Of a stretch of DNA of 64,000 bases, positions 12,430-48,087 are shown one piece after another; the first letter of the stretch is position 1; each line of letters starts with the position of its first letter. Location: the NCBI GenBank assembly GCA_030704615.1, contig CM060731.1:88908001-88972000 (forward strand). Reading direction: 5' to 3'. The notes below the pieces were generated by a model. The model saw only the letters and a program-made list of their open reading frames with translations. It ran no database searches and had not been told where the DNA came from. The position numbers and the translations under genes were made by a program. The stretch comes from Takakia lepidozioides (Eukaryota; Plantae; Bryophyta).

Positions 12430-12645
12430 GTGCACATGATCCATTTCTCCACAATGTGGAGAGATGGTCTATGGCTCCCACTCTTGGGATCAAGGGAAAG
12501 ATGTGGAGAGTTGTCCATAATTTGCATGCTCACACCAGTGTGGGCTGTGTCAACAGTTAATGGACAGAAGTCTAACTTCTATGACATAGACCAAGATGTG
12601 GCTCAAAGATGTACCCCCTCCCCCTTTTATGTTGAATTATTCAAG
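12430..12645 (+). pseudogene. LINE reverse transcriptase fragment
   Basis: FSTMWRDGLW ... VNGQKSNFYDIDQDVAQRCTPSP, equivalent to the non-LTR RT motif GV.QGC.LSP. Confidence 0.65.
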
Positions 12646-13139
12646 TAAGCTAATTGGTTGGATGCAACTCACATGTATCCCTAGTGCAGGAGCCTCGTGG
12701 ATGTAGCAGGAAGTAACAACAGCAATTGCACACTTGGTACCCTCATCTTTAATACAACCTGTTCTGTCCTCTTTTCAGAGTAGTCCCTAATTGTCCAGCG
12801 AAGGGGAGGATGTATATGGATTATGGGTGTTGTGGTAGGGATAGCTAAAGGGGCACACAAAGTAGGGCTGGTTCTGTTTTCAGTGCACATGGTGCTATTT
12901 ACAAAATTATTCGATCAGAAATACAGGGTGATGAACTTGTGCCCTTAGACTGTGTTTTGAGGAGCTAGATTCTGGGACAACAACGCTATTTTGTAAATCT
13001 GATTGGCAGTTGTTTAAGAGAATCTCTTTTTACATCTGCTGTTGGCTTAGTGTCTCTGTTATGTCCATTTGACTTTGTCACTTTGTTCTTTCTTGTGAAT
13101 GATGGTGTGTTATGATTTTCCAAATAATTAAAAAAACCA

Positions 13140-13713
13140 AATTCTCAAACAACTAATTTGATGCCACGCGTCCAACCCAACAAACCCCTTTACAGTAGGC
13201 ACCATGACTACACAACATCGTATCATACATTGACACATGTCATATCCTTGGAAAAACACATAGCAACGAGCTCCTACAGGCATAGTCATTGGAATGACTT
13301 TAAATACATTTAAAATTTAAAATAAACTAATCATATGATGCCACGGGTCCAAATATCAACATGTTGGTAGTCAGGATAATGACTGCAAGGCTTCCTTATA
13401 ATATGCCACGTGTCAATTTTTGGAGATGCCATATGGCGCATGTCCACGAAAACCTTCTGGACTTATTAAAAAGAGACACGTGTACAGTTTGCAGCAGCAC
13501 ACTAAATCATGGATGGTAGAAGTACATATGACTACCAAATGACAGTGAGATGTATCACTTGGTTCATCTTATTGCAGTCATACGTGACCGACCATCATAT
13601 ACTCATTGTATTCACTTGGTTTGCACGACTTAAAGTCATTGCAGTCATATGTACCGTTTATGACTACGGGATAGTCATATATACAGTCATATATACCGCG
13701 ATCTGTTGTAGTG
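13140..13713. mobile_element. Non-autonomous CACTA-like end region
   Basis: Ends ...ctgttGTAGTG at 13713; repeated atgact/agtcat/ccacgtgtc motifs; left end not resolved. Confidence 0.5.
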
Positions 13714-14367
13714 TAAATTTAAGTGTTTGTCGGATTTGTGCATCAAAAGCGGCTTTAGTGTGCCAGAAGTTTATACTTGATACAGCATGGTACCTTACAT
13801 GGGTGGGAGTGACTGAGCTGTTGGGGTGGGCATAATTCTGACAAACACACTTTCATTTGTGACAGTGAACCCTAAACAGTCATGAAGCTGTGGCATGAAT
13901 ACTTTTCTGACCCTAATCAATGGTGGCCCAATTGTGGCAAAAAGGTGAATGTCTGTTGGATTACAGAGAGTAGCAGATGCAATTGAGCATATGAACTAGT
14001 GTGAGAAGTTGAGTTGGGTGTTTCCTAGAACAAATGTAGGCTGTTATTGTCAGTTGCTACCAGCAAGGCAAGGATGTATGCATGATTTGTGCAGAGGCAT
14101 GGATAGCTGAAGGAGCAGGGATAGAGTGTGGGTCCAGATTCATCGGTGAGGGCCACATTTCAAGCACAACATTGCCTATGATTCCTTGTGGGAGAATAGC
14201 TACAAGAAACCTGCATGGGTAGATGGTCAACTGGAAGCCGCAGCAGCAGCGACACAATTGGTAAATTCAGGCAATGAGGGCACCTTCTTCAACACATTTT
14301 CACCCTGTTTTTCCCTCTTATTAGAATCGGCCCTAAATTTCCATGTTGAATTCTGCAAGTTAGCTGG

Positions 14368-14730
14368 TGGTGGACACATGTATAGCAAATGTGGGAGCAC
14401 TGAGGATGCGTGTTCAACACTATGGCTGAACGAGATTGTGCGTTTGCAGTGCGTGTGCAAGTCTGGCAGCTTTGGATGCATCACCAAAGTTGGAATTGTA
14501 ACAGATGCGATCCAAATGTGGGGAGCATCAAGGGTATGCCAAATGCCTCATATGCCAAATGTGGGAGCATCAAGGGCAAACCTGGCAGCTCTGGAAAAAG
14601 GGAAGAGGTCCATGGCTTCATTGTCAAAGCTGGAATTCTACCTGATGTGATTCTGAACAATGCCCTCGTGGACATGTATGCCAAATGTGGGAGCATCAAG
14701 GATGCAAAGGCAGTTTTCCAACACTATGGC
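14368..14730 (+). pseudogene. PLS-class PPR fragment
   Basis: VDMYSKCGSTEDA, EVHGFIVKAGILPDVILNNALVDMYAKCGSIKDAKAVF. Confidence 0.85.
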
Positions 14731-25719: not shown

Positions 25720-27372
25720 GATGAATTTCGGCGCCGAAATTCATCCTATTCAAGTACTTTCGTACACAAACTTACAAATTTCGGCGCCGCAATTCATCGC
25801 TTCCCAAGTCCTAATTCGTCATGAGCAAACCTGTCAGTGGGATATCGGAGCCGGAATTAAATCCGGAAACAGTGGAAACGGCTGCACTTGGGCACATTTC
25901 ATCCATATTTCGGCGCCGAAATTCATTACGAATATCTCCGTCCACGCGTAGACGAGGTGAAATCATCCATATTTCGGCGCCAAAATTCATTACGAATATC
26001 TCCGTCCACGCGTAGACGAGGTGAAATCATCCATATTTCGCGCCGAAATTCATCCAGAGCGAAGACTAAATCGGCACCATGCTATGCTTTGCCGCCATCA
26101 TTGCCCCTGACGGATGCTGTCCATGCCTGTTGGACTTGCCATTTCTGGACATTTAACTATAATTTCGGCGCCGAATTATCCTTTATGTGCGGCAACGTCC
26201 CGTGCGAAAAAGACCACTTAATGGATACTGTCGGTTTCAAATGGAAAAAAACGGCTAAAATACAATTAATTTGACAGAATGGGTTCAATATGCCGATTTC
26301 TCCATTAAATGCAGGAATATTCCTGTTATCTTCGTCGGAACGGGGTATTTCCAACGATTTACGGAAAATTATATCATCCAGAAGCAAATAGTAAGTGTCG
26401 GGTTTGGACGAATTTCGGCGCCGAAATTCATCCATTTCAAAGAAAAATAAATATTGGAGGGAGGGGCATTGGATGAATTTCGGCGCCGAAATCCGGCGCT
26501 CAAACCCTGAAAAATTTGGAGGGATGGAGTCGGTTGAATTTCGGCGCCGAAATTCATTGCTCGCGAAGAAAAATAAATAAATTCGGGAGGACTTCGGATG
26601 ATTTCGGCGCCGGAATTCATTGCTCGCGAAGAAAAAATAAAATCGGGGAGGACTTCGGATGAATTCGGCGCCGAAATTCATTGCTCCGAAGAAAAAAAAA
26701 AATTCGGGAGGACTTCGGATGAATTTCGGCGCCGAAATTCATTGCTGGCGAAGAAAAAAAAAATTCGGGAGGACTTCGGATGAATTTCGGCGCCGAAATT
26801 CATTGCTCGCGGAGAAAAAAATAAATTCGGGAGGACTTCGGATGAATTTCGGCGCCGAAATTCATTGCTCGCGAAGAAAAAGGAAAATTAGAAGGGAGGA
26901 CTTGGATGAGATTCGGCGCCGAAGTTCATCTGTCGCAAAGAAAAAAAAAAAAAAAAAAAAAAAAAGAGACTTCAGATGAATTTCGGCACCGAAATCCATC
27001 CGCAGGGCAGCAGAATTAGGGTCGGAAAAGGAGATGAAGAATGAATTTCGGCGCCGAAATACATCCATTCTGCCGATTCAGGATTACTGTCATTCGGATG
27101 TCGGCACCGATATCCGGACACGTGGTGAATCACGACTGTAATCAGGAACACATTCATCTGTATTTTGGCATCCAAATTCAACCCTCATGTGCAGAAACAA
27201 TTTGATGAAGAAGATGTTCATCCGAATTTCGGCACCGAAATCCATCCGTTGGATGCTTGGTCAGTTTCATGAGGTGAACAAATTACTATTTCTGTCGCCG
27301 GAATTCATCCCCTGGCTTCCAAAGTTGTTACATGACAGAGATGTTCATCCAGATTTCGGTGCCGAAATTCAT
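25720..27372. repeat. Array of palindromic GAATTTCGGCGCCGAAATTC motifs; ~62-bp tandem period at 26530-26930
   Basis: More than 20 visible full or variant copies; related half-sites at 22920-23200 and 29520-29990. Confidence 0.95.
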
Positions 27373-28167: not shown

Positions 28168-31100
28168 CATTCCACATTCGGGAAGGAGAAAGTGGCAATT
28201 ATATTACATTCATCTTCTTGCACCCTATTTTTTTTGGAGGAATTATACACTTGGTGGTGCCGCATCGCCATGGCTACATGTGAATTTTGGTGCCGCAATA
28301 CATGAGAATGTGGTTTTTGGCCATGAATGGCATGCGCATGCTTTTTTTATTTTGGTTGTCTACAAATGGATCCGAGTAAAGCATACATTGTGTGGAGATT
28401 AACGGGCATTGAGGCCTATTTCAGCGCCGTTTATGGTCTATGTACTGCATAGTGCTTCCTTGTTACTGCTCTTCATTCAATTTGTAGTGATTTCGCAGCC
28501 CATCCTGGCGTTTTCGTCCACCTCTATGAGAAGACTCCAATTTGCTACAAATACATTGTTACTGTTCTGCAAATGTGATGTCTTTACAAGATTGCTAGTT
28601 CTGTGTCCCAGTGGGAAGGGTCCTACTGCACATTCCAGCATTTGCATACTGCACTTTGTGCAAACAGCAATCCATACGACAAAGGACACGTCCCAGCATA
28701 CTGGCAGTGAATTGCAAAAAACCTTAACAGAAGATTATCCAAGCATGTATATTCCCCATATGGCACAGGGAAGCTGCTTGATTTCTGAATGAAAATGTAT
28801 GTGCCATGAGTGTCGGCGAGTCGAAACATGTCTACTCTAGCATGCAAGACCTATGGTCCCCTCGCCCAAGAAGAAGGAACTCTAACTGGCCTCTCAAGGA
28901 CCTCCTGAGTGACCGGGTGCCTATATTTGAACAAAATGTCAGTGGTTTCTGTCGCCCGGTTGAAACTAACGAGGATGTCGTGTTTATCGATAGCGCCCCC
29001 TTGGTAGAAGGACATTTTCACAGTGGGCCCTGTGTTCCCCTCCTCCTCATCCTCATAACTGAAGAGAATGTCCCACTTTCCGAGCCAGTCCGTCCACGCG
29101 TAAAGTTTTCACCTATGCACTCATCATACGTCCACTCGCAACAATTCCAGCGATACAGCAACGCTGTGCGTGATCTGTTCGGCTCCCACTCATGCGGAAA
29201 GTCCAGGTCCATGATGCGTAGGAACCACCTGCTCCCCAACCGGGGTCCAGGAGAATCGTGCAATCCTGGAAGAAACTCCATTGCTCTCAGCTGGACAAGT
29301 CGAGGATCGTCCCTATAAACATCCAGGAAAACAATGATGTCGTCTGCTTTCGGGAAAATGACTCCCGTCTAGCGTCGATAGATGTGATTCGGGCACGACA
29401 TGGCCTCACGACATAGCACGAACTCAAAGCAGGGAGGAGATGGGCACAACAGAGAAGAGTGAAGAGCAAAATGAGAGCAAGGCCTCCCTTACCGTAAGGC
29501 GGGTATTTGCTCTCCGGAGCCCAATTTTGGCGCCGTTATTGGATGGAGTGCGGAAGCTTCAGCTGAGAATTTTGTTTCCGCAGGTCAATTTCGGCGCCGT
29601 TATTGGTTGCAATCCCTAGCCTTCAGCCGGGTATTTGGTTTTCGGACCCAATTTCGGCGTCGTTATCGGCTGCACTCCGGTGGCTTCAACCGAGTATTTG
29701 ATTTTCGGGGCCCATTTCGGCGCCGTTATCGCCTGCACTCCGGAGGATGCAGCCGGGTATTTGGTTGGCGGAGCCCAATTACTTTCACCGTTGTTGGCTT
29801 CACTCCCGAGCCTTCAGCCGGCTATTTCTTTTCCTGTGCCCAATTACGGCGCCGTTATACCCAACCATCATGCACTTCTGCAACAGTACTATCCACGGTT
29901 ATAGGTCGCCATTGCGTTTTCGGAGTCTGCAAACCCGGATCCTAATTCCGCTTGCGTCTCTGCCTCTGGGATAATTTCGGTGCCGTTATTGCCCAGAATT
30001 CAGTTTTTCTATGACCTGGCCTAGCGGTCCATGAGCCTGGGCTCCAAGTCATGAGCGTACACTGGTACTCATGAGCGGAGTGCTTCCAGCATGAGCGCGG
30101 AAATCTTCGATTTTTGATTATTTTATAGTTTTGGGCCCGAAAAAAATCTGCCGAAATTCGAAGTGTGTTACTTTGCGACTCATGGGTGAGCCATGCCCGC
30201 TCATGAGCTCATGAGCTCACCGCTCATGAGCTCATGGAATAGCAACCCCCCAACTACAGTGGAGTACAACTGCCGGCACCTTCGAGCTTCACTGCACCGC
30301 GGCCACCTCTTTATCCAACATCTCCAGGTACACCTAATACCCTGAAAGGGAAAGGCATTCTGAAATAGACCGAGGATGCATTTGCTCCGCATCATCCTGT
30401 GGGGTGGGAGACAGCAGTCCAGCCCCAACAGAGTGAAGGTGGTAACATGCATGGTACTGCTGAAACTTTGCAGGATTCCAGCCTTAGTCCTGGGGGGACA
30501 TCAGGTGTGACTCCTATAGAACGCAAAAATGCTTTAAGGAGGGAAAGAAGGGCACTTGCAAAAGATCTGAGAGACCAGGCTGCTCAGAATGTGGCTGTAG
30601 GGAAGAGGAAATTTTTCATTTCTTGTGATGAACTTGGAAACCCTGAAGGTCCTGCTCGGAACCAGTGGATGACAGCTCTGCGAGGGCAGTGTCAACGTTT
30701 GTTGGACTGGTCATTGTATGCTCAGGATCAACCATTACACTTAATTGAAAAGATCATGGAGATCCTGGCTTCAGATTGGGAATACGGACCTCCTGGTCTT
30801 AACATAAAGGCTATTACAAAAACAATTTGCGGGCAGCTCAAGTACCAACGAAATAAGCTGTTCAAAAATTACTATAGTGTGGGGCTGCCCAAACCCCATC
30901 ATGTGCCAGACAAGACATGGGCACAACTAGTTGTTAGTTGGGGTTCCACTGATTTCAAGAAATTTCAGGCAAATGGTGTCAAGGCGCGCGGATGTGTGAA
31001 GAATACATCTCGATCAGGTCGCAGTGGAATCAGCGGTGTTGTAGCACGACTGGTATACTTCTCTTACAACATAGGAAGTTCCCACATTGTTTTGCATTGA

Positions 31101-33848
31101 CAAACTTTATGTGTTGGGTTTTTTTGGCTAGAGCTCAGAGTCTATTCCTATCACCATTGAATTAGTACACATTGCTACTACTTGGGGGCCTTCTCAGAGT
31201 TGGGCGCCAGCAAGAAACTAAGCACTCTTATTGAGGGGGAGTCATTGACGCTATCCTAGATAATTCTTTACTGTTGGCAGTGTGCTATGCTAGTCATTAA
31301 CACTTGCAAGTTTGTTGCAATCACAGGAGAAGGAGACTGGACGTACACCAAGTTTGCAGGAGATCGCCGGTAGCGCCAGGAGTGACAAAGGCTACGGCTC
31401 GGGGTGTACAGGCAGTGCAGCCACAACGGTATATAAACTCAGTACCAATTCTGGTGTGAATTACATATTCGTGATTTCCATGCCATTGCTAGTTGCCGTT
31501 TGGTTCTGTTTTCTTACTAGTTCATCAGTCAGTGTAGTGAATTGTTACTTTGGAGGTGTTCTATGTGATGGGGCAGGGAATTGGTTCACTAGCAGCTCGC
31601 CTCGATGCTATGGAAAACAAACAAGTGCAGATGGAAGCCAGCTCCAAGGCAGCTTTGGAAGCAGTCCAAGGCCAACTGGAGGCAGCAGCTGCATTCAACA
31701 TTGCGCTCGCAGCTAAACTTGGCATGAATGTGCCAGATTCGGAACCTACAGGTCCACCATGCACCACCTTTGCACCACACACAACAAATGAGACTATTTC
31801 TCATGTTATGGGCTCACCACTCAACCTGTTCAAGGCAGTTTCTTCACCGCCACCAAAGCCAAACACAATAGGCTCATTGTTTGGGCTTTCAGAAATGGAG
31901 GGGGATGATGACATGGAGGGTTGGTCTGAAGGTGAACTCAATCCATCCCCCCATATTGTTGAGGCAACTGCAAAGTGTTCATCCGTTTTGTTGTCCCCTA
32001 CACCAGTAGCACTTCCGGCATATGTACTACCCTCTCAATATGCCTATGAGGTCTCCATGAATTTGCAGAGTGCCCCACAGAAAGGTGTGTCTTTTGTACA
32101 TGATAATCATGTACAAGTTGTTGGTAATTGCCCTTCGGCAACTGAGAGGCAGAAACACATCCTTATACTTGACTTGAATGGATTGTTATGTGAGAGCAGA
32201 CTACGAACAAGGGAACACCTAGAGCCCACTGTCACCTCCAGACCTGGGTGTCAGGAGTTTCTGGACCGATGCCTTCAGATTTTTGATGTAGGTGTATGGT
32301 CTTCCATGTCATTGAGTAATGTCCTTCCAGTTGTGAAAGCATTGTTTCCTGGGAAGCAACCAAAGATGGTGCTTCACCAAGACTATTGTGACCAACCTGT
32401 GGGAATGGTGGACCCTCTCAATCCTTCTAAAACTGTCATGTACAAGAACTTATGTAAGTTTTGGAAGGACTACAGCCATTACAATCCAACCAATACTTTG
32501 CTGGTGGACGATTCCCCACTCACTTGCTTACCCAACCCTGCAAATAATTGCATCTTCCCGTATCCATGGAAGTTGAGGGATCAGCCAAACTGCAAGAGGC
32601 TTATGAAAGAATTACTGCCTTGGTTAGAGGGTGTATCCAAGGCTGCACACATCCCTGAGTATGTGTTAGGGCACCCATACAGATATGGGCAGCCCAACTA
32701 CTTGTTCAATACTGCAGCCATGGGTAGTGGATCACAACAATCTGCAAAGGCATCCGAACCAGGGCTTCCTGCTGCCAGAGTTCCAACGACTTTGCCTCCC
32801 GATGCAACAACAAAGCATAATCAAAGAAAGGTGAGAGCAAAAGATTCAATGCGTGGGTGCGTGGGTGGATTTGTATTGTTAATGCTACTTCACAATGTGT
32901 GTCATTCGTGCTATTCTCATTTTTTGATCATGTGTCATTCAATATGCAGATGGTGAAACCAGTGAAGCGTTCAATGGGCAGGGAAAGCACAATATGTGCT
33001 ATCAATCAGACTACAACCACAGTGGATGTAACTGAACCATGGGGTGACCAACAAAATCCGCACAGTGTAAGTACTTCCTTTGTCCTCTTTTGTTTCCTTG
33101 TCTGATGCTGGATCAATATACCCCCTATGTATCGCTGTGTAGCTGCAGGATTGACAACCTACAAAGGTAGTTTTGTGACATCATCCTACCACATCCATGT
33201 TGACCATGCAGAACCTGCTATCAACTAGGTATGACACTGTTCCACCTTTGATCATGTCAGCATGGAGTATAGAGACAGGCAAATGCAATTCAGAATTGGA
33301 AGTACTGCAATAGGTAGGCTTGGGGTGTTTGCTGGAAGAACGAGGATGCATTTTGCAGGAGTGCCAAGCTGTCAGTCTCTGTTCTCCAGGGTTCATTTCT
33401 GATATAGGAATCTGGTTTTTGTTGCAGTTTCAGATCGGCGACAAGGTGTTATTGTTTGATCCTTGTGCACCAAAAAGAAGGGCAGGTGTGGGATATATTG
33501 CTGGATTTCCGAAAGCAAATGTGCCAGACAACTATTACCGTATCCATGTGAAATCGGTCATGATTTCAGAGGTTGTGTTGCCGTACCCGGACTACTCTGT
33601 TACCCCTAATCATACCACATTGGGTGACACGCAGGGAAGTGCCACCTTATGGTCTGAAAAGTTTATTAAACACGCGTGATATTGAAGATGCTACAAGTTT
33701 AGTTTAGTTTTCTTTATGGATTGAAGGTTGCTGAGACAGGTGAACAAAACAGCTCTTCTCACATGAACAGTATTTTTTGAATTGATGCTCTTGCTATTCT
33801 CATGTATGATCACAAGATCCCCTTGTTCAAAGGCAACTTCATTTTCCC

Positions 33849-34194
33849 TGTCAAGTTAAATAAGCACAGTGTGAAAACAGCTAGAATAAAACTAGTTATT
33901 TGTATTTAACACTTGGATTTAGGTCAAGTGTTAAATCAGGTGTCAAGTTTAGTTTGACACCTGGTCCGTCTTATCTTCACGAGAGCGGCAGTCGCGCGGC
34001 TCATCTCTCTCGAGTTGAGCCTGCGCGACCGAGCTCCTGCATGTGTTTAGGTTTGAGTGTGCTTATGTAGGGGTACAGGTTGTTGTGGGGTGGAGTCCCC
34101 ATAGCTTGGGGTGCCCCTGGCTCGACTTCTGTTTCAATGAGTGATAGCGATGGATTTTATATTTCTTGTGTTGGGAGTGTGTCCTTTTTTTAGC
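33849..34194 (+). repeat. Repeat A1 (346 bp)
   Basis: Matches 43464-43811 except for one substitution and a 2-bp indel. Confidence 0.95.
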
Positions 34195-34399
34195 TTGTTT
34201 ATCACTCGAGAGAGATGAGGCTTGCATCTGTGAGTGCCAGAGGTGAGTTTAGTTTTAAGCACTTGTGGTTTTTGTTTTAGAAGTGAGAGAAGAAAATTAT
34301 GGTAGATTATGTTTGTGACAAGGCTGGTGGAGCAGCAGGATGATGCGCAAATGTAAGGAAGACTGTATGCAGCATGCATGCAAGAGTGTGGTTGTGACA

Positions 34400-35569
34400 A
34401 GGGAACAAACGCTTGCGGTTGAATAGTTGTTGCAAGTTGGGCACTCGGTGCGTCGCTATAACTGCAACTGTACAGGAGCACCGCGAGAGGCAGATTGCTC
34501 TACAGCCTTTGCTGTACTTGGTCAGTCCAATGGTGACAAATCCAGACCTTGTTAAAGCAACATAGACAGAGAAGCAATTTATAGAAAGAAGGTGAGGAGC
34601 AGTGAAGAGTGTACGGGAAAGGGAGCCCTGGCAGCCATGGCATAGCATCGTGCTCCGCACCACGGGTTATCTCGAAAGAATCGATGAAGAGTAACGATGC
34701 GAAAAGCCCGCTTACAATGTTGAAAATATTCAACACAACATGCGGATTATCTACCTGAGTGCTTCTGAAGCTGCATGGATTAAGCTTCTTCAACACAGCC
34801 AATGGAGTGTTCATTATATGACAATTATGACCAAGGAAGTGAGGAAATGCCTCATCTGCTCAGCTCAAGCTTCCCCGCTCTACAAGCTCCACGCTCAAGC
34901 TCTTGCTCCACGCTATAGCAGACATGGTGAAATGGAAGGGATGCACTCGGCTTTGTGGTATCTGAAGCCAAGAGACAGGGAAAACGATTGATACTCACCT
35001 TCACCAATAATTATTCTATCTTCGGTGGAAGACGCAATATGTGCAATGGGCGAGCCAGTATGCTGGTATTCATCTGAATTCAGAGGATGGCGGCGTATGT
35101 GAAGAACTGGGATTCTAATCATGTGTTGGAGCTGCAGGGAGGTAGCGTGGTGGCGTAGGGTCGCAAGCACGGGGTCGGGGACATTGGCTGGTAGGACAGC
35201 AACGGCAGTGGTAGCGCCGGCCGGGTAGAAGGCTGAACTGAAATGCTTGGTGTCAGTTGGAACAACCTTTCCCTCCAGCAAGTCCACCCAACATAGCTCA
35301 AAGACAAAGGAGACCTGTGACCGAGACATGGAGTGAGTGGTTATCCAACCTTGAAGTTTGTGGCCAGTCTGAATGCTGTTGCTGCCCAACTTGGCCAGAC
35401 ACTCGGTACACGAGCTTGCAAAGCTGCAGGGAACATTGCAGACAAGTCCAACGGGGATGTTGCGGTGGATCAGTATACCGCTAGCGGGTATGCTTCTACT
35501 TTGAACATGATCGCTACCTGAATTGAGATAGTGCCTTGCCCTATCGGAGTATGCAGACCTATGCTCCAA
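34400..35569 (-). other. Possible spliced antisense cargo gene in the retroelement leader, product unknown
   Basis: 218-aa minus ORF with acceptor tcacag| near 35315 and donor AG|GTGAGT near 34998; further open blocks at 34400-34750. Confidence 0.4.
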
Positions 35570-36878
35570 GCTTCAACTAAATGACGAAGCTGATATGGTT
35601 ACTCTCTACTCTGTGGATAGTCCAACACAGTTGCCTTTGTCAATAAGCTCCTTCACCACTTCCACATTTGACACTAGGTCCGAAGATTGTCTGAAGAGAG
35701 AGCAAGTGCAGATGGCAGCTGCCCACCAGGTTCTGACAAAGTATCATCAGGGCTTGTCCCTGCATTAGGGATGGCTCGAGTGCTTGCATCACGGGAAACA
35801 GATGCCTGACGCTGCACAGGCCATCACCATCGCCATAGCCATACACCCGAGCTCGAGAGCCGTCGCTGGAGCAAAGCAGCTCACTAAGCGAGCAAGTCTG
35901 TGGTGCACCTGTAACCACAAATGAAACCTGGGAACGGTTCTTAATGGCGGGAACGTTTTGGTGTTAAAAAAAAAAAACAAAAAACTTTGATATAATTTAA
36001 ATGATTTAGAGCCTGGTTGGTCATAACTTTGTCAAATGGACTCCGTTTGACTCAGTTTTTGGGTGGATAGCTGCAGAAAGGGGAAATCTGCATATCTGCA
36101 TATCCGCAACCGTCTCAAAGCTTTCGAGTTGAGAGACTATTAGACCCTACCTTTGTTTTCTCTAGTGTTCAGTGAGCGGGAGATAGGGGAGTATTGCTTT
36201 GTCTCTACTTGGCAGAAAGAGGAGGAGGGTTGGTTAGAGCGAGCTACTGTAGCTTGGGACAAGGTTGGTGGCAGGTTTCAAGACATAGATATACCTCCTA
36301 CACCTTACCATCATGCAGAGAGAGGCACTTTGAGAGAAGTCTGGCAGTTGATAGCATAGATCAGGATTAGATCTTGCTTGGGCGGGCTTCTATTCTTCCC
36401 CTCCATTTCTGTACTATTTTCATTACCTTGTACTTGTAGTTGCCAAAGCCTCTCTTGGTGGAGGCCAGTCAGTCCGGGGTTTTGGGCTGGGATATTCTGC
36501 AGGATCAGCATTGCAGCTGGATTTTGGTGTGGGGGTGTTGATGTTTTGATTTCCTGTGTTTGGATCCCCCCCAACACCTGCATGCTTGACTGTGCGCCAT
36601 GTTGGTTTTGTGTGGGCGCTTGCTTTCATAGGGATTAGGCCGGATTTGATCACCGGTCAATCCTAGAGTATGCTGTCGGTGGTGAGGCTGGAGTGATGAC
36701 CAGTAAGACCACCAGTGTTTCTTCTATGGTGAGGCTGGGTTGATGACCAGCCAACCATAGGAGTTCTTGCGGTGGATGCAGGTGCAGGTGCCCTGAGCCA
36801 TTGGGATATGACCCTTAAACTGCAACAGGTGCCCACCCGTGTCACTATTAGATTAGTACTAGAGCCTTATAGTGTCAC

Positions 36879-39830
36879 GTGGAGGAGGTGCACATTGTGA
36901 GTGTCATTACGGAGTTACCCAAGGGTTTTGAGGGGAGTACGGCTACAGGCAGTAACAGTGAGAGTGGGTTCACAAGACGAGGTATTCGATTCAGACCACC
37001 TTCACCGCCACCCTCAATTACTGTAGAGTCAGACACAGACTCGGAGGCTTCATCAACAGGTGTGCACTTTCATTCGCCATTGTTGTGGGACGACATGGAG
37101 GAGATGTATGGAGCTACCAAGGGGCCTCGTAGGTACTCTGGAGCTGTGGGCACAATCGAGTTGGATGACTTTATCTAGGAGTTCGACAGCTGGTGTGATT
37201 TGCAGCAGATGCGCAATCCACAACTATTCACCCCATTCATGGCGTGGAAGGGACTGTTTCAGCATTTGGAAGGCCCGCCTATGGACGATTACCACAAGTT
37301 CAGGCGAGGACATGAAGCAGAGATTGAGGAGTGGAGGATGTATTGGTCACCTGACTACGTCTCCATTACTCAAGGCACGACGCGACCAGTAGCTGCATCA
37401 GTACCAATAGCTCCCACTGCCAGCACTAGTAGTGGAGCAAGTAGTGCTGGTACTTCTGTAGGTGGTACCAGTTCAAAAGGTGCTACTACTCTTCCTGCCA
37501 CGACTACAACACATGTGCCTAGATTCAACCCGGTGGTGGAGTTCTTCCAGGAGTTGCGGAAGAACTACCAAGGTGTACGGACAGAGAAGCTGCGAAGTTT
37601 GCAAGACTTCCAGCGCAAACCCAGTGAGAGCCTGCGAAAGGCGTATACTCGTATGAGGCGCTTGATAAGTGTGACCCAAGGGGTTACTGAAGCTCAGGCA
37701 ATCCAGTTTTGGTATGGAATTCTAGACAAGGAGCTCAAGAGAAGGGTGCGAGATGCAACCCTATTACAAGCAGCCCAACCCACATTAGCAGATGTGTTTC
37801 TGCTGGCTGAGCGGATTGAGCTCAACATGGTGGAGGAGCGAGTTGTTACCATTGGATTTGGCAAGGACATGCCTACACGGGGCACAACTGTGAGCCCACA
37901 GGCACAAGGGACTGCCCAACAGCGTGGTCAGGGGGGCAAGGTTGCCCAGCCCAAGTTCCATGGAGCTTACAGGGGACCTCAGGAGCAGAGGCCCGTGGCA
38001 TCTTTTGCAGGCCAGCAGCAACCAGGGGTGATATGTTGGACATGTGGAGGACCCCATGTCAAGAGAGATTGCCCAGAGAGTGGCAAAAGGCCGGCACAAG
38101 CACAGCCTGCACAGTTGCAGTGTGGGCATTGCGGCAAGTATGGGCATGGAGATGCCCAGTGTTATGACTTGCATCCTGACTTGCGCCCAGGCCAGTTCCA
38201 AGGGAATAATGGTGGTCGGGGGCGAGGTGGACCAGCCCAAAGAGGACGAGGTGGTCGGGCACGAGGTGCAGGCCAAAGGCAAGCTCCACATGGCCAAGGA
38301 CGCGGAGGTCAGGGTGTTGACCAAGGCATGGCCAATCGGCTTCAGCAGCTAGAGCAGAGGCTCGCTGCCATGGCTATAGCTCAGGCGGTACCGGCTCCCA
38401 GGCGGGATGGTCCACCTCCTGCTCCTGAGGGAGGAGATATGGGAGGCATGGGATTCATGTGCGGAGCAGCACTACCACTAGAGCAGGTGGAGTCTGCTGC
38501 AGCAGTGACTCGAGGAGCAGCACGAGTTCCTGAGCCACGAGGTGCAGAGGTGGAATTGGATCCCCAGCGTGGGGAGGCAAGCCGTCAGGCGAGGCTTCCT
38601 CAGTCATTCACATTGGCGGAGACTGTGTTGACGCCATCCATGGCACCTAGTTCTCGCCCGACTGTTACCGAGGCGCAAGTTACTATGCCATTGGGGAGAG
38701 CTACACGTGCAGCACTGACACCTGCTACCAAGGCTAGTGCAGCCGGTGTGTTATTGGGGGCAGCCACCTCTGTGTGTCAAGCCCCATTGTTCTCGGCAAC
38801 CATGATTGCGACGCCGGGGGTAAGGCCAGCTGCAGTGTTCAGACTAGCAGCAACACTCTGTGAGAGTGGGGAGGTCACTTCATCTTCTGCGGAGTTAGTG
38901 GAAGGTGTAGTGGCAGAGGGATCCTCGGATTTGAGGGTCAAGACTGCCATGGCTGCGCCCTGGCAAGCTGCAGCTGCCAGGTTGACGGAGCTGCCAGCTA
39001 GGCCAGCCTTTGAGCGCGCCATGGTGACACCTGGAGTTGTCTTGTTAGACAACCAGGATGGCATTTTCTCTTTGAGTGGACCGGCAGGCAAGAAGTACCG
39101 GCCATTGCGGGTCTTGTTGGACTCGGGAGCTCAGCCACTGATGTTGGGCAGAGCTGCTATTGCAGGTTTGGGCCTTATCGAGGCGGATATGGAGCCTTGT
39201 CCTTTCCAGATACAGACATCTCTGGGAGGATCAGAGCAGGCTCGGGGCATGACACGGCATCAGTTGGCCATTAGACTACAGCCGGATCATCCTATCGATG
39301 GCTCAGTAATGCGAGCCAAGGCCATTGTAACAGACGCGGTCTCTTATGATGTCCTCGTTGGTGGGGCAGTGTTATACCCCATGGGCTTCACCCTGGATTT
39401 TTGGGAGGAGTCAGCATTCTACAGGCCTGGATGGCAGTCAGGGGATGGTCGTCGTGCACAGCTCCCTGTAACATTCATTGGGGGTATTGCGGCTGCCCAG
39501 CGGGGCAAGATGCCAACACTAGCCGCCTTTACAGCTGCAGTTAGTTGGCCTGGAGAGTTGCTGGAAGGCAATGCCCATGTAGAGGATGTGCCACCTCCAG
39601 CAGAGCAGGATGATATGCATGGTATGGCGGAGTTGCCTGCCATGATTACTCACACTCCATTGTGGGGTACGAGCAAGGATTTGCAGCAGGTTGCTGATCG
39701 ACGGGTGCAACAAGCCTGGGTAGAGGCTTTTGTACCGTCAGGAGAGGAGGAGAGTGCGGGTATTGCACCAGGACCACCTCAGTTGTCACCATTGGATACC
39801 ACACCTATTGTGTGGCAGTATCCGGATAAA
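36879..39830 (+). CDS. gag: Gag (two zinc knuckles) and aspartic protease; one in-frame TAG at 37176
   Basis: LQDFQRKPSESLRKAYTRM; CWTCGGPHVKRDC and CGHCGKYGHGDAQC; VLLDSGAQP ... YDVLVGG. Confidence 0.9.
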
Positions 39831-40775
39831 GACATTTGCCTTTTGGACTTGTTTGGCAGAATCAGCACCGAATTGGCTGCTGTGCTACAGGCAGGTGTGC
39901 GGGTAAGGCGTTACCTGTATGTGGAGAGGGATGAGATTGCACGACGCGTCTCACTACGCCATGTTGCTCAGTTGGTACAACAATATCCTGCTTTGTTGCC
40001 AGTGTCTGCAGTTCGTGGATACCAACAAGCCTTGCCATTAGACATTTCGTTGCTGGGGGCGCCGGATTTGGAGCAGATTGGCTCCATTGATCTGGTAGTG
40101 GCAGGTTGGCCCTGCAAGGGCATTCATCAGCCGGGCATGGCAATGGATTGCGAGACTCGAGGACGGGTCTGTTTTGGGAGATGGTGCGGATTTTGCGCCA
40201 CTTGCAGCTTTATCAAGCTGTATCGCCAGGGAGAATGTGCCACTGATGGGCGATTCTCGGGCCAGGGTGATGGCCAGTGTGCATCAAGTCCGGTCATGGC
40301 TTGGGTTAGCAATGCTGCTGGATGCAGCTGCAGTGGGATCACGGGCTCATCGTCCACGGCTATGGTGGACTAACTTGATGCCACCTGCACTACTCAAGCG
40401 TGCATTTGATGGGGTGCAGCGGCCAGCACACCTCACCGTGGATGGCATTTTGGACACAGGGAGGCAGTCTCAACGTGTGAGACACGATGACCGTTCGCCT
40501 TTGGCAGTGGTCAACAGGGTGGGTCAACCACGAGCAACATTACCTACACTGCTCAGCTTCCCAGGATCCCATGCTTTTCGGGATGGTGGACCTGGCCTCC
40601 TATGGGATGCTCAGTTGCAGCAGTTAGTGGAGCCTAATGCCGACGAGCGAGAGCGGGCTATGGGGTTTTCCACTGGGACCACGGCGGTGCCTTCTCTTTT
40701 TGAGGCAGCACGGCGTCAGGTGTTGGGGCAAGCAATGGATCTCAATTGCTTGACTTGGATTATCAGCTTGGCTAT
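39831..40775 (+). pseudogene. C5-cytosine DNA methyltransferase domain, DNMT3/DRM-like, in frame with gag-PR at its start; frameshifted
   Basis: Motif I LLDLFGRI; II YVERD; IV DLVVAGWPC(QG.S.AG after restoring 1 nt) then GLFWEMVRIL; VI ENV; VIII AHRPRLWWTNL; IX ERERAMGF..GTT; X RRQVLGQAM. Confidence 0.9.
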
Positions 40776-41199
40776 GGCTGAGCAACGTAGAGTGCGGAGT
40801 GCATTCCCCTTCATGGTCTCTCTGCCTACCGAGACGGTACAGGCAGCGAGTGGGGGCGAGCCGGTGAGGACCACGGGGTGTAGACATCCATGGCACACGT
40901 GGGAGGTGCTCGAGGTCCAAAGGGAGTTGGCAGCCAAGGCAGCTGTGATGGATGAGGTTGGGGATTTTTCTCGGGTTGAGGAGGTTCTCAATGATGAGAT
41001 GATGGGGCAGGATGAGGCCTTGTCATTGACTGAGCAGGAAGGGGGTACTGCTCAAGAGGTTGCAGCATAGCAACCACGGGACGCGTCCTCTACCTCTAAG
41101 CCCACTGGACTTAAGGTTGCAGTTACGGAGGACAATTGGGAGCCTGACATTGGACCCATTGTCACCGGAGGAGAGAGACGACGTATACGGCGGGTCCTG

Positions 41200-41480
41200 A
41201 GGGCTTACAGGAATTGCTTTGCCTTCAGTTTGAAGGACTTGGGAGCACTGAAGGGTCAAGAGATCCGTATTGAGTTGGCCACTGACACGCCAATCTTTCG
41301 GAGACCCTATAGATACAATGACATGGAGAGGTCTTTGATTCAGATGAGGACTCAAGATCTCTGGGAGGCAGGTTTGGTGGAGCTCTCTGGTGGAGAGTAT
41401 GCTTCAGCCACAGTGATGCCAGCTAAGCATCGACCGGGTTTGGTCAATCGCAATGCAGATGGGTTGAGTCACAATCCATG
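41200..41480 (+). pseudogene. Start of Gypsy RT fused in frame to the end of RNase H (internal deletion)
   Basis: IRIELATDTPIFRRPYR...LWEAGLVE..EYASATVMPAK joined directly to HRPGLVNRNADGLS at 41427/41428. Confidence 0.85.
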
Positions 41481-41769
41481 CACGAGCCAGCAGGATGACA
41501 CTGGAGCTCGGTGGCATGGTGAGACGGACGAGGAGATGGTGCCCGGATGGCATGCATCTGCATTTCTGTGTATCTTGGCAGCGGAAGGCCAGGTTGGACC
41601 TGCAACAGGGATGACTGTAGATCAAGTGTCTGAGAACCCTGAGGCCAGCAATGAGCAAGGTGGCGCCAAAGATATACATGATGATTCAGTTGTGTTGGAC
41701 TACCTCCGCACTGGAGACACGGCAGCCACTGTGACTACCAAGGAGAGGGATCGGATCCTACAATGAGCC

Positions 41770-43116
41770 AAGAGGTTCAAGTGGGAGGGGACACACCTGC
41801 TCCGAGTGTGGGAGGATGGTCGAGTGAGGATTGTGCCTCACCCAACACAGCGGGCACGGTTAGTGCGCCATGCCCATGAGGAGTTGGGGCATTTTGGGGT
41901 GCGACGCACTCATAGTCTACTGCAGGGGCAGTATTGGTGGCGTGGTATGCACACAGAGGTGCAACAATTTGTGGCTAGGTGCATGGTGTGTGTGACAGGG
42001 TGCGTGCTTCATTCAACGCCCTACTCCACAATTGCACCCTCTTCCGATCATGGGATTGGGCTACAGGTGGAGTCTTGACTTCGCAGGGCCGTTGCCACTG
42101 ACCATGCGCCACAACAAGTACGTGTTGGTGATGGTGGAGCACTTCTCCAAGTGGATTGAATTGGTTCCATTGCCTGATAAGGCTAGTGAGGGAGCTGCAT
42201 ATGCATTCCTGGATTGTGTGCTTAGCCGATTCGGTGCTCCAGCTGAGGTACTCACGGACCAAGGGAGAGAGTTCTTGGGGAGTTTCAGGCTTTGTGTGAC
42301 AAGGCCTTGATAGACCACCGCACCACTTCTCGGGATCATCCTGAGGCCGATGGCTTGGCAGAGAGAGTTGTTCAGACAGTAAAGAGGGGTTTGCGCAAGT
42401 ATGGCTTGCAGAAGGGACACCTAGGAGATTGGGACCTTCAGTTACCCTGGTTAGCCATGGGCTACAGGTTCAGCAAGCAAGCATCACTTGCCTCCTTCTC
42501 ACCATACTTTCTTCTCTTTGGCCGAGAGCCGGATTTGCCTACATCCATTCGCAGAGAAGCTGCTACAGTTCTTAACCTTGACGATTCGGACGTGTGGGCA
42601 CGTGCATGTGAGCAACGTGCAGAGTTGTTCAAGAGAGTCATGCCCATGGCTTTCGAGAACCTTGCCATTGCACAACACCGTGATACGTTGAGGTATGCTA
42701 CCATACGTGGTGGGGGCTATCGTCCTGGGGTTCGGAGATTCAACCCTGGTGAATATGTCTATCTGCAGCAGACTGCTCCTACGACCCTGGATGTGACTGC
42801 AGGACGTGTTATTTTGAGGGTTCGAGAGGTCTTGCCCTCAGGCGTCTTGGTCTTGGAGGGTCGGGATGGCATAACTTGGAAGGACCATGTGCGTAATTGT
42901 GCGCCATGTCACCTTCCGAATGTCGATGGCAGGATTGACCCAAACCTGGCAGTGGTATCTGCAGGTTTGAGGTGCATGTTGTGTGGGTCTGCTAAAGGGG
43001 CAGCCACCATGCTGGTGTGCGATCGATGCTCTAGAGGTTGGCATATGGGATGCTTGACTCCACTTCTTGAGATGGTTTCTGATGGGGATTGGTTATGTCC
43101 ACATTGCATTGGATAG
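41770..43116 (+). pseudogene. DDE integrase with a C-terminal PHD finger; frameshifted
   Basis: HAHEELGHFG..YWW..CMVC; WSLDFAGP; TDQGREF; HPEADGLAER; SPYFLLFGR; PHD CMLC..CDRC..WHMGC..WLCPHC (C4HC3). Confidence 0.92.
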
Positions 43117-43374
43117 TGGGAGTGGATACAACCATGGAAGGCTAACAAGCAACGCAAGGCCCAGCGACTAGGAGACCTTGAACACACGAGATCCTGGCTC
43201 AAGTTCACAGATTGCAAGACGGCGACTAACGATGGGGCTACTCTTGTACCCGGCCCCTTGGTCTATAGAGTTTGAGTACAATAGGGACAGTGATAGAGGA
43301 CTTAGTACGGCTGTGGCTATTACATCTTGTAGCTATCTGGAGGTAGAGGGACCTATCCACCAGCTAGGGGGGCG

Positions 43375-43461
43375 ATTGTGGCAGACTACTTTATTGTGCA
43401 TATATGTGTGGTGTGGTTTGGACAGCGATGTAGTTGTGTAGCGATATGTATGCGCACGACA
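43375..43461 (+). repeat. Repeat B1 (87 bp), preceded by PPT-like AGGGGGGCG
   Basis: Matches 43812-43898 with one substitution. Confidence 0.95.
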
Positions 43462-43463
43462 GC

Positions 43464-43811
43464 TGTCAAGTTAAATAAGCACAGTGTGAAAACAGCTAGA
43501 ATAAAACTAGTTATTTGTATTTAACACTTGGATTTAGGTCAAGTGTTAAATCAGGTGTCAAGTTTAGTTTGACACCTGGTCCGTCTTATCTTCACGAGAG
43601 CGGCAGTCGCGCGGCTCATCTCTCTCGAGTTGAGCCTGCGCGACCGAGCTCCTGCATGTGTTTAGGTTTGAGTGTGCTTATGTAGGGGTACAGATTGTTG
43701 TGGGGTGGAGTCCCCATAGCTTGGGGTGCCCCTGGCTCGACTTCTGTTTCAATGAGTGATAGCGATGGATTTTATATTTCTTGTGTTGGGAGTGTGTGTC
43801 CTTTTTTTAGC
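43464..43811 (+). repeat. Repeat A2 (348 bp)
   Basis: Direct repeat of A1. Confidence 0.95.
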
Positions 43812-43898
43812 ATTGTGGCAGACTACTTTATTGTGCATATATGTGTGGTGTGGTTTGGACAACGATGTAGTTGTGTAGCGATATGTATGCGCACGACA
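43812..43898 (+). repeat. Repeat B2 (87 bp), element 3' terminus
   Basis: Direct repeat of B1, followed by the TSD TCCC. Confidence 0.95.
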
Positions 43899-44701
43899 TC
43901 CCACATCAAGCCAAATTAAACTTGTGTAGACATGAATGTGGTATTTTGCTGGTTGTTTGCTATATTTAATATTAATAACATTACTACTGGTCAATGTGGT
44001 TCATAATACAATTATTATCCATGTTTTAAATAAGCTTTTGTTTAAATGAAACAAAACAAATCAAAATTCTAAAACAATAATATATTACATATTAAATCAA
44101 GCAGCCAATGGCTTTTGGGGTGCTATCCCATTTATTATAAGAATAATAATAATAATAATATGACTATTCATTTTGGCATTTGTCAACAAATAATAATTGT
44201 TTACTTTTCATCCAATAGGAACAAAAGAGTGGATGTGACAGTATTCACACTAGTGTCATTGCGATCACACCACGACTTGAACCTGGTGTTAAATCTGTGT
44301 GAGAGAGTCCGTAAGAAGAGCCCTTAATATCTATTATTTATTTAATAATTCTGATGGACTCTATTACGTGGCATTCCCTTTGACATACATGTGGCAAACA
44401 TGGTGGCGCCGAGGTGTAACAAGTACCGTAGAAAGACCATTAAGATTACTTAGTCAAAATAGTAGTTGAACTAACCAGTCAAAACGACCGTCAAAATATC
44501 CGTCAAAAGAGCCACCTAAGCCTACTGCCACATCAGGTGCAAGTTTGGTGTGAGATGGTTTTTTTCACAGGACCAAGAAAGTTCACATGTGGTGCAAAGG
44601 ACTAGGTTAACCTAACACCAAGGGGGGGGTGTGAACTTGCGTTTTTTTCACACCAAAATGTGTGAGAAGAGCCGTTAAAAAAACCAGTTTCTGTACTAGT
44701 G

Positions 44702-47700
44702 AAGTGGTTGGACAGTTTATGGTGGAGTACATTGGAAAGGGTCCATTTTTGGATATGTAGTTTGGTATGGCTAAGAGAAGCTGAGGCTTGTTTGTTGGCT
44801 TCTTTAGTCAGAGTCTTAAGAAGGTTCCGAATTGGCCTAGGTTCCGGGGGGTCAGGTACTGGGTGGATTAGCTAGAAATGGTGTGCATGAGCAATGTGAA
44901 TGGGGTCGGTCGAAGGTTCTACTGAGGGTTTGGAGGCCCCCGGCTGGGCGAGGAGGTCAGCCTCCTCGTTGCCAGTGATACCAGTGTGAGAATGAACTTT
45001 GAGAAAATGAATAGGTTTATCGATGGAAATAACGAGTTTGATAATTGCGGAAATAAGGTTACAATCAGGGTGATGTGGTGGGAGGAGGGGCAAGCGAGAT
45101 GATTACTAAGTAAAAAGAGGGAGTTGAGGCTGTCCGTAAAAATGTAGTATGGTGGTGGGAAGACATTTAATTATGAGAGAGCTTAAAAAATAGCCATAAG
45201 TTCGGCACGAAGTATGGTTGCGGAGTGGTGGGCCGTCCCTTTGTTAGTGGCGGCATGGTAGATGCCATATCTGGCATGGGAGCCAGATTGGGAGCCGTTG
45301 GCGTAGAGTGAGTGGAGAGTGGGGTATTTGGGGGAAAGTGAACTGGGGGAGCGTCATATGGGGTTATATAGTGGATGGTAGTGGGGCGGGGAGGTGCATT
45401 GGCCCATAATTTGTTAGATATTGGCCTAGGAGTAGGACTGGTAGAGAGGCTGTGTGAAGGTGGGAGCGGATAGGTGGTGATTAACATGTTGTGGGTATTG
45501 GCTAGGAGATGATTGAGGCGAGTGGGGAAGTCGTGGGGTAAGGAGGTGTGGGGGGTAGCTTGGACTAGATGAATTAGGGTTAGTGAGGGTTCCTTGTGGC
45601 GGAGGTATTTAGGGAAGGGCAGGTTGCATGTATAGCGTAGCTGGTTGGGTTCAATGGCGACTAGTGGTGTCACCCCCGAGGGAAGTTGTAGGAGGGGGGT
45701 GTTGATGGTCATGTGAGTTTTGCTGTGTTAAAATGAGGATAGTGGCGGCGGAGGAGGAGGAGCGGACGGCAAGGCGTGCCCACTGAAGGGCCTCATGCGA
45801 GAGGGGCCCGAGAGGCGGGTGGGCAAGGCCACTGCCTGACCAGGTATGTTGAGTTGCGGAGCCTAGGGCTCCAAATACACAGTGTCGAGGGTGTGGGTTG
45901 TCATAGGAAGAGCTCAAGGGGGCAAGTGAGCGGGCTTGAGTAATATGAATGGGTAATCTGGAATGAGGTGATAAGAAACTTAAGGATGTCCTGGGGGATG
46001 GCGCAGTGGGTATAGGCTTGGGCTAGTTTGTCCAGGGTATGAGGTTTTTTGGTGGGGGTGTCGTGTAGATACCTAGCAACAAGCCAGCAAACCTCAGTGG
46101 CAAAGTCTTGCCTAGGGGGTTGTAGCTGGCTAGTGGGGGTGGTGGACGCGGTGTATCGGGTCCAGAGCCAAGCTAGCCTAACATGCGAGATAGACCCAAC
46201 GAAGTGGCCATTTAGAGTGTAGATGTGGGATGCTATCCGGCTAGGGCATATGATGGGGGAGACTTGGTCAATATCTTTGTCAGGGTAGCACTCATAGGTT
46301 TGTATAAGGATTTTTGGAGTGACTAGGGGGTTGTGAATGTATCGGACGTCCATCGTTTGGGGTTGGGAGACATGCTGTTTGTGGGTGTGCGCTAGGTATT
46401 TGGTGTAGTTGATTTGTGGAAAATGGTGAGGAGGTCTCAGTTGTGGGCAGGGTCGCAGTCATCATGGGTCCCGAAGAGGTCTTCTTCGATTTGCCAAGTG
46501 TATAAGTAGTATGTATCGACACAGGTGGCGCCAAAAGCGTCAAGGGAGGTTTGGGTTTTGATGCCTAGAATAGCCTCAACAACGAAGGCCTCGGGGTGGT
46601 CAGAGTTGTCTAGGCCGTTGGGGTTAAGCGGGGAAGTGGGAAGTGGGAAGTGGGGAGCTAGAAGGGGTGAGTTGATATTGATTAGTGGCGGGATTGGGGG
46701 AGGGAGAGATAGGGGGGTGTCTAGGGGGGGGGGGGGAGTGGGGCGCCCGTGAGAGTGGTGAGAGGATTTGATCCGTTGGAGTATTGAGGGAGCCGGGGCT
46801 GTTCTAAAAGCAGGGAGGAGTGGGAAGAGCGAGCATGGGAAATCACAGTTAAGAGTACAAGAAGTTGTTGGATGACATAAGAGGGAGCGGAGGTGTGGGG
46901 TATCTACATGTTTTGATAGTAGCACGGGAGTGTTTCAAGGTAAATTGACTGGGAGTTAATAGCCGAACATCGTCGGCTGTGGTGAGTTGGGTGAGGTTAG
47001 ATATATGACGAGTTTTGAAGTAGGCAAGGATGAGTTTCTTTTGTCGTGGGTGTGAGGTTTCAAATTGTGAGAGAAATGGGCTGGCAAGCCAAACACGTTT
47101 AAGTGGTGAGATACTGATTGAATATACGGGTAAGTCAGTTTGTATGCTAATCTTTATTTGACGTAGGATGAATAGTGTACGGGCGGTTGGGGAGTGGAGG
47201 CAGCACTGGGGATGGAGAGTGGGGAGGGAGTATAATCCATTATATTTAGCGGCCAGGTATTTAAGGAGCCCTCTAAAAATTAGCCCTAGGCGGCCAGGGT
47301 CGTTGAGGGCTTCTTGAAGTTGAGATCCTAGGGTGCGGGCATATGAAATAATTAGGGGGCTAGATCCGATTCCATAGCTATCCTGGGGAAGTTGAGTGAG
47401 AACGTTCGAGGTGCTAGTGGGTAGTCCACAGATTCGTTTGGTGATGAACTAGTAGAAAACTGCCTCACTGAGCCTTCAGCAACCTCACCAATGGATAATC
47501 TTTTTGTCGAGTTGTTTGATGTCAGGAAGAGAGAAGGGAGCTGCGTGAAAGGCGTATTGGACTTGTGGTTTTAGGACTGTTTGGATGATAGCAAGTTTAG
47601 GGCGGATGGAGATCGGGGATTTGAGTAGGGCTATGCTTCTGTCGGTTAATTTAGAAGTGTGGTGCTTTTCTGTACATGCTAGGTGAGAGAGGGAATCGGT

Positions 47701-47765
47701 TGTATGCCCAGATGAGTATAGGGCTCATCTGGGCCTAGGAAGGGAAAGGGTTTTTGTTGGTAATG
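44702..47765 (-). mobile_element. 5'-truncated, degenerate non-LTR retrotransposon (LINE) with RT thumb, extra domains and RNase H; a short continuation lies at ~14750-14799
   Basis: PFLGPDEPYTHLGI, VQYAFHAAPFSLPDIKQLDKKI (RT end); YIFTDSLNSL, HFLKVHSHTGITGNEEADLLA (RNase H). Confidence 0.85.
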
Positions 47766-48087
47766 TATGTGGAGTTTACAATGTGATGCAATCATGGATT
47801 TTGTGAGTTTACTGAGGTGTGTGGCAGCAGTGACCACGCATTTGCGTAATATATACAAGTTTATGGTCTATCCAACATCCCTTTGTTTAATACTAGATAA
47901 GTAATGTCGGGGAGGCACATTTGCCTAAACATGACTAATTGAGAGTCATAAATTGTCGTGCTTATAATTTTGAATTGTAGTTGCATATGAAAAGAAGTCA
48001 TGAATACTTACAATTGTTTTGTTGATACAAATTATTATATAAATATCTATGCGAAAATCTCATAATGAGATTTAAGTTATTGCACAT

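Follow-up and report, generated by a model that had tools for sequence, protein, structure and literature searches.

How does a retrotransposon begin to copy its RNA when the sequence behind its left repeat offers no site for a tRNA primer? This question is raised by an element at positions 33849-43898 of a 64-kb stretch of Takakia lepidozioides DNA (hereafter, the window). The element is a Ty3/gypsy-DNMT3 retrotransposon of the bryophyte/streptophyte kind, and an initial annotation of this DNA had drawn attention to two complementary 16-mers, one inside the left repeat (repeat A1) and one just past its end, reading them as a signature of self-priming. To our knowledge, self-primed reverse transcription has been proven only for Tf1 of fission yeast and is elsewhere a prediction from sequence. 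The Tf1 primer is 11 nt long, and its use requires an extra stem, similar to the U5-IR stem, beside the primer duplex. Here we ask whether the two 16-mers of the window belong to such a system, and we argue that they are probably the self-primer and the primer-binding site, of the Tf1 type, of this Ty3/gypsy-DNMT3 retrotransposon.

Results

A Ty3/gypsy-DNMT3 element with permuted repeats

The element starts with TGTC and finishes with GACA, and the same 4-bp duplication, TCCC, is found on both of its flanks (Table 1). Its repeats are split and permuted, in the order A...B-A-B, and the two copies of A, A1 and A2, align with one mismatch and one 2-nt indel. At the junction between B1 and A2 both element ends are repeated head to head with 2 nt between them, and together with this intervening GC the junction forms a 10-nt palindrome (window 43458-43467), which is conserved in three relatives (L004:16456-16471, L005:14468-14483 and L006:13950-13965). 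The A...B-A-B order itself is also found in L004 (Calypogeia), in L005 (Sphagnum), in L016 (a metagenome contig) and at the 3' end of L006 (Riccia). Because the layout is common to several relatives, three of them complete and one represented by its 3' end, we rejected a one-off rearrangement as its origin. Target-site duplications of 4 bp were seen in three elements, as TCCC in the window, AATG in L004 and ATTC in L005.

Table 1. Positions of the features discussed in the window and of the 12-nt arm and its complementary site in eight related elements
Element	Feature	Positions	Strand	Remarks
Window	Target-site duplication, left copy (TCCC)	33845-33848	+	
Window	Repeat A1, starts TGTC	33849-34194	+	Holds putative promoter, arm and R/U5-like part
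Window	TATA-like box TTATCT	33971-33976	+	About 28-32 nt upstream of the arm; putative function
Window	5' arm, predicted self-primer and first RNA bases	34000-34015	+	Exact complement of 34204-34219
Window	Second stem, 5' half TGAGCC	34016-34021	+	Predicted to pair with 34119-34124
Window	Second stem, 3' half GGCTCG	34119-34124	+	Predicted to pair with 34016-34021
Window	9-nt spacer, A1 end to primer site	34195-34203	+	Missing at the A2/B2 junction
Window	Predicted primer-binding site	34204-34219	+	Complementary to the arm
Window	Coding region: gag (CCHC), protease-like and DNMT3-like	36150-41070	+	Frame breaks
Window	RT/RNase H remnant	41335-41745	+	By comparison with a 530-aa relative
Window	Integrase (H2C2 zinc finger, rve core) and C-terminal PHD finger	41800-43116	+	Three frames
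Window	Conserved polypurine-type tract adjoining B1	43357-43374	+	Motif in Calypogeia, Sphagnum, Riccia and an assembly scaffold
Window	Repeat B1, 87 nt, ends GACA	43375-43461	+	
Window	Repeat A2	43464-43811	+	Preceded by GC; second arm copy at 43615-43630
Window	Repeat B2, right element end (GACA)	43812-43898	+	
Window	Target-site duplication, right copy (TCCC)	43899-43902	+	
Window	12-nt arm; site	34004-34015; 34204-34215		
L001	12-nt arm; site	4460-4471; 4640-4651		
L004	12-nt arm; site	2016-2027; 2197-2208		
L019	12-nt arm; site	5466-5477; 5622-5633		
L018	12-nt arm; site	4758-4769; 4926-4937		
L002	12-nt arm; site	5680-5691; 5850-5861		
L005	12-nt arm; site	5909-5920; 6079-6090		
L003	12-nt arm; site	4441-4452; 4557-4568		

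The direct repeats run in the same order, A1...B1-A2-B2, as those of Ngaro/DIRS elements, but the element differs from these in having a DDE integrase (Pfam rve), TG...CA ends and 4-bp duplications and in lacking a tyrosine recombinase; these features, together with the empty site described below, led us to reject a tyrosine-recombinase reading of the Ngaro/DIRS kind. The polypurine-type tract runs up to the first base of B. Since this tract adjoins B and the primer site follows A, the LTR that reverse transcription defines would be B-A, and the ends used by the integrase are where A starts and where B stops. A leader of about 2 kb without similarity to relatives separates the primer site from gag (34220-36100); long leaders, of 1-5 kb, are usual in the Gypsy-DNMT3 family studied here.

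The coding part of the window copy is broken, and its RT/RNase H region carries a clean internal deletion at 41427/41428, by which residues 34-396 of a 530-aa RT/RNase H relative are missing (about 363 codons, in comparison with L007). Relatives of the segment 40174-41070 carry PF00145 and have RVT_1, RT_RNaseH, rve and PHD among their neighbour genes, and no match to the Pfam DNA_methylase family at E<0.01 was obtained from the window's own open reading frames. For the DNMT part, relatives were found in Calypogeia fissa, Sphagnum, Marchantia and Riccia. At its C-terminus the integrase carries a PHD finger and no chromodomain. As a lead only, a language-model search for look-alikes placed fungal, vertebrate/chordate and plant RT clusters nearest.

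For the comparison we fetched 20 loci around related DNMT genes. Three short motifs proved to be conserved, namely the polypurine-type tract at B1, the palindromic B/A junction and TGAGCC inside A. The comparison of the arm/site module is confined to eight elements, the window and seven relatives: L001, L004 and L019 from Calypogeia fissa, L018 from Marchantia paleacea, L003 from M. polymorpha, L005 from Sphagnum and L002, an assembly scaffold. A DNMT-gypsy lineage from JGI metagenome contigs (L007-L015) was excluded as more distant, the three motifs being absent from it; its reverse transcriptase, RNase H and integrase genes are intact, and no terminal repeats were found within its contigs of up to 16 kb. 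In Sphagnum jensenii one element (L020:15348-15480) ends with the polypurine tract, B and flanking sequence, with no A2-B2 beyond; this element is either A...B in form or has undergone a deletion between B1 and B2.

Complementary 16-mers at the end of the left repeat

The initial annotation described 34000-34015 and 34204-34219 as reverse complements, and the match is indeed exact over all 16 positions. Beyond the 16-mers there is no exact pairing on either flank, and a 27-nt version reaches 81% complementarity. Within the 64 kb of the window the 16-mer is present three times, as the arm, as the site and as the arm copy in A2, where about 0.04 occurrences would be expected by chance. It is also the longest exact reverse-complement match between A1 and the 40 nt that follow it, and over 20,000 shuffles of A1 the maximum match was 13 nt, against the 16 nt observed. 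The annotation had further placed the site 9 nt past A1 and had noted that its polarity would prime synthesis back into A1. The distance agrees with the alignment to A2, which puts the end of A1 at 34194 and leaves the site to start at 34204. The polarity is correct as well, but it adds no evidence, because any inverted repeat shares it.

No TGG occurs in 34190-34235, and a primer site for a tRNA 3' end (CCA) is thus absent there, as had been claimed; with TGG lacking close to the repeat end, priming by a tRNA 3' end was rejected. No tRNA genes were found in the window or in the 11 of the 20 fetched loci that were scanned for them, and an Rfam search of 33700-34700 returned nothing but a sub-threshold miRNA match. 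By eye, no shared tRNA-type site was found in the sequence after the primer site of the relatives.

In the three relatives with both copies of A (L004, L005 and L016) the site begins 0-1 nt past the end of A, which is where reverse transcription is required to start if A ends with U5. In L001 the site likewise lies at the repeat end, as judged against the A of another copy in the locus. Compared with this spacing of 0-1 nt, the 9-nt spacer of the window is long, and it is also spanned by diverged contigs of the same genome. An extension of the pairing into the spacer was considered and rejected, since the spacer bases have no complement in the sequence 3' of the arm.

The pairing is conserved and co-varies across eight elements

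In eight elements the arm consists of the 12 nt directly 5' of a TGAGCC-type motif (with a single deviating base in L003 and two such bases in L005), and the complement of the arm follows about 130-190 nt downstream. This family-wide core of the arm corresponds to 34004-34015 of the window. All 12 pairs are of the Watson-Crick type in five elements, the window included, and these five have five different arm sequences; L001, L004, L018 and L019 each show 12-13 exact pairs. L002 keeps all 12 pairs, two of them as G-U, which is legal in RNA and not in DNA. Mismatches, one or two, are found only in the old copies L005, whose A1 and A2 are 90.6% alike, and L003, whose second repeat is gone. In a scan of the window and the loci gathered by that stage, Watson-Crick matches over all 12 positions beside an exact TGAGCC were found in LTR modules only.

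The initial annotation had proposed compensatory covariation among copies as a check on its reading, and across the eight related elements the complementarity is both conserved and co-varying, with both sides changed at 8 of the 12 positions of the arm/site helix. In an alignment of seven sequences this helix has 96.4% of its cells paired, with covariation at 8 of its 12 pairs. A second stem, formed by the TGAGCC-type motif and its downstream partner, is paired in 92.9% of cells across seven elements and has one pair changed on both sides. When the two helices are taken together as one structure in the seven-sequence alignment, none of 500 shuffles came up to the values observed, and a partner shifted by 1-3 columns left 26-51% of cells paired, against 95.2% observed. 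As far as aligned sequences can tell, the covariation shows that the pairing matters, but it does not thereby prove a role in priming.

Promoter-like box and predicted fold

In all eight elements the first arm base is preceded, at a distance of about 30 nt, by a TATA-like box (TATA, TAAA or TAGA in relatives, TTAT in the window), and from its position the RNA of the window element is predicted to start at about 34000-34004, that is, at the arm. This lends indirect support to the start near 34000 that the initial annotation had proposed. The minimum-free-energy fold of an RNA spanning 34000-34225 brings its first 16 nt onto the site and 34016-34021 onto 34119-34124, at -95.1 kcal/mol compared with -67.6 for shuffled sequences (z = -6.1). 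The predicted fold of L004 has the same closure (z = -2.5).

A sequence nearly identical to the primer site stands 1-4 nt upstream of the arm in several relatives (L001:4445-4471, L004:2001-2027, L002:5667-5691 and L003:4426-4452); in the window and in L018 such an upstream copy is absent or degenerate. This upstream copy and the arm can fold into a tight hairpin that spans the predicted RNA start. On the RNA, only the 3' copy of A would have the hairpin, which could block priming by that arm.

The window copy is young and was moved in trans

In a contig from a public run of the same organism (X1), position 33848 is followed immediately by the sequence that comes after 43902. This contig is the empty site, which identifies the whole unit as one recent insertion. 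Since the target site stands uninterrupted in X1, the sampled material must be polymorphic or heterozygous for the 10-kb insertion. Having lost its reverse transcriptase, the window copy is unable to replicate on its own, and others must have mobilised it; it is a young, non-autonomous copy moved in trans. The recent move of a copy without reverse transcriptase, documented by its near-identical repeats and the empty site, implies that its cis signals worked in trans.

Over repeat A the summed contig depth is about 20-250 times that of the flanks, which suggests many genomic copies, though it is not a copy count, and the stretch just after A is at about ten times the flank depth. Among the variants listed, none with a frequency of at least 5% falls in 33999-34038 across the A copies of the genome, with several on both sides of this interval, and none is a substitution in the primer site. 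The variant-free interval among genomic copies of A is suggestive only.

Discussion

A candidate self-priming mechanism

The comparative evidence supports the self-priming that the initial annotation had proposed, and the biochemical steps may be sketched by analogy with Tf1, on which the RNA start, the RNase H cut and the extension into cDNA are modelled. Transcription would start at about 34000-34004, some 30 nt past the weak TATA-like box in repeat A, and the first 12-16 nt of the RNA would fold back over about 190 nt onto 34204-34219, with the neighbouring conserved stem 34016-34021/34119-34124 possibly assisting the fold. The RNase H of the element, as in fission-yeast Tf1, would then cleave the RNA where the duplex has its 3' end, and from the 3'-OH released in this way minus-strand DNA would be made back across the R/U5-like part of repeat A. 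Finally, the plus strand would copy the primer, so that the site would be rewritten as the exact complement of the arm. Such rewriting predicts that young copies are perfectly complementary whatever the sequence of their arm, and that decay appears only in old ones. The five different perfect primer/site pairs seen in young copies are the pattern expected if the site is rewritten in each cycle.

One observation fits poorly with this scheme. If synthesis started beside the primer, the 9 nt at 34195-34203 would be predicted at the A2/B2 junction too, and they are missing there. One way out would be that the joint between A and B is made by end-joining and that the 9 nt were lost in the window insertion.

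Going further, we hypothesise, tentatively and with some doubt, that self-priming could be one half of a replication cycle that has not been described for integrase elements. The LTR would then run from B, after the polypurine tract, to the end of A, before the self-primer site, and the integrase would take the palindromic B/A junction inside this LTR as its ends. An inserted permuted copy would need a circular or end-joined intermediate, similar to a 2-LTR circle, and the absence of the 9-nt spacer at A2/B2 would reflect trimming at the joint.

Alternative explanations

The main rival to self-priming is that the pairing is a conserved stem of the leader RNA, closing R/U5 and serving in packaging, dimerisation, translation control or strand transfer, while another primer, such as a tRNA fragment or a small RNA, starts the DNA. 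We consider this unlikely, but it has several points in its favour: what covariation proves is selection on pairing, and a packaging or translation stem would co-vary too; the spacer missing from A2/B2 sits badly with synthesis starting at 34203; and the second site-like copy just upstream of the arm in several relatives hints at alternative folds. On the other hand, neither a TGG near the repeat end of the window nor, by eye, a shared tRNA-type site in the relatives was found, and in the three relatives that have A twice the complement lies exactly where the repeat ends. Moreover, the contrast between perfectly Watson-Crick young copies and decayed old ones is expected from rewriting of the site, and less so from a stem that is kept by selection.

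It is also conceivable that the pairing has no part in priming and serves the formation of the A...B-A-B layout, by bringing ends together for circle formation or template switching. The family does insert as A...B-A-B, with its TG...CA ends inside the LTR of reverse transcription and with 4-bp duplications, and a permuted insertion with internal TG...CA ends needs some unusual step. This explanation is nevertheless quite improbable, in view of where the two sequences lie: arm and site both belong to the left end of the RNA and have nothing but the R/U5-like part of A between them, neither of them touches B or the B/A junction, and their geometry is that of Tf1-type priming. Least credible of all, to a degree that we hardly entertain it, is that the match arose by chance or is a functionless leftover of a local duplication or inversion. 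A small palindrome in the arm, CTCGAG, does raise the odds of a self-match slightly, but none of the 20,000 shuffles reached even 14 nt, the pairing is conserved with compensatory change in Calypogeia, Marchantia and Sphagnum, and full 12-nt matches beside TGAGCC were confined to LTR modules in the scan described above.

Relation to known systems

Self-priming has been proven for Tf1 and is implied for the Tf1/sushi group (PMC4600332). Like Tf1, Tf2, Tj1 and the Tf1/sushi elements, the family studied here has no tRNA site and carries, beside its 5' repeat, a site complementary to the (here predicted) 5' end of the RNA. A loop precedes the primer site in both, of about 130-190 nt in the elements compared here, and the second stem beside the primer duplex may be the equivalent of the U5-IR-like stem of Tf1. 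The arm differs from the Tf1 primer in its length of 12-16 nt, and the RNA start and RNase H cut are in our case placed by analogy. The family further differs from the Tf1 group in having a PHD finger instead of a chromodomain, a DNMT3-like domain in pol, and permuted A...B-A-B repeats.

Among plant elements, the accessible part of the survey of Neumann et al. 2019 gives self-priming as a prediction for 12% of LTR elements, a share made up of Tcn1, from mosses and clubmosses, and TAR, of the Ty1/copia superfamily (PMC6317226). As described in that part, these have a site complementary to the LTR and no tRNA site, which is likewise the case here, in an LTR element of bryophytes; the same part contains no mention of elements that carry a DNMT or have split repeats (PMC6317226). 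Self-priming has thus already been predicted in plants, in Tcn1 and TAR, and what the present analysis adds is a case in a DNMT-carrying family with permuted repeats.

The closest description of such repeats that we found is that of KnitGypsy-Dnmt3 from Klebsormidium nitens, whose repeats are arranged as in DIRS and whose domains are those of Gypsy, according to the legend of figure 4c in de Mendoza et al. 2018 (PMC5890265). With this and other streptophyte Gypsy-DNMT3 elements, as that source presents them in its accessible text, the window element shares a Dnmt3-like domain inside a Gypsy pol, and the DIRS-like order corresponds to the A...B-A-B found here (PMC5890265). The hosts differ, being bryophytes in our case, and the likeness is one of description and not of Klebsormidium sequence. 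No statement on the priming of Gypsy-DNMT3 elements was found in the accessible parts of two sources (PMC5890265; bioRxiv 10.64898/2026.05.21.726589).

The eight elements provide a comparative and well-controlled case of a self-priming layout in a DNMT-carrying Ty3/gypsy family of liverworts and mosses. In a family with permuted repeats, the primer site and the polypurine tract fix where reverse transcription starts and ends, which makes the origin of DIRS-like repeats in an element with a DDE integrase directly testable. There is also a practical consequence, in that Gypsy-DNMT3 elements of the A...B-A-B type will be mis-handled by annotation pipelines that expect a tRNA primer site and a plain pair of LTRs.

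Other features of the window

Several features outside the element were observed in passing. The tandem arrays at 25899-27029 and 29519-29845 consist of units of 61-64 nt with a palindromic TTTCGGCGCCGAAA core, and just to the right of the element, from 44000 to 48000, the sequence has a strong GC skew of 0.38-0.44. The region 8600-14700 holds several families of dispersed direct repeats, and one repeat pair there, 9711-9797/14603-14689, appears by eye to resemble a pentatricopeptide-repeat gene.
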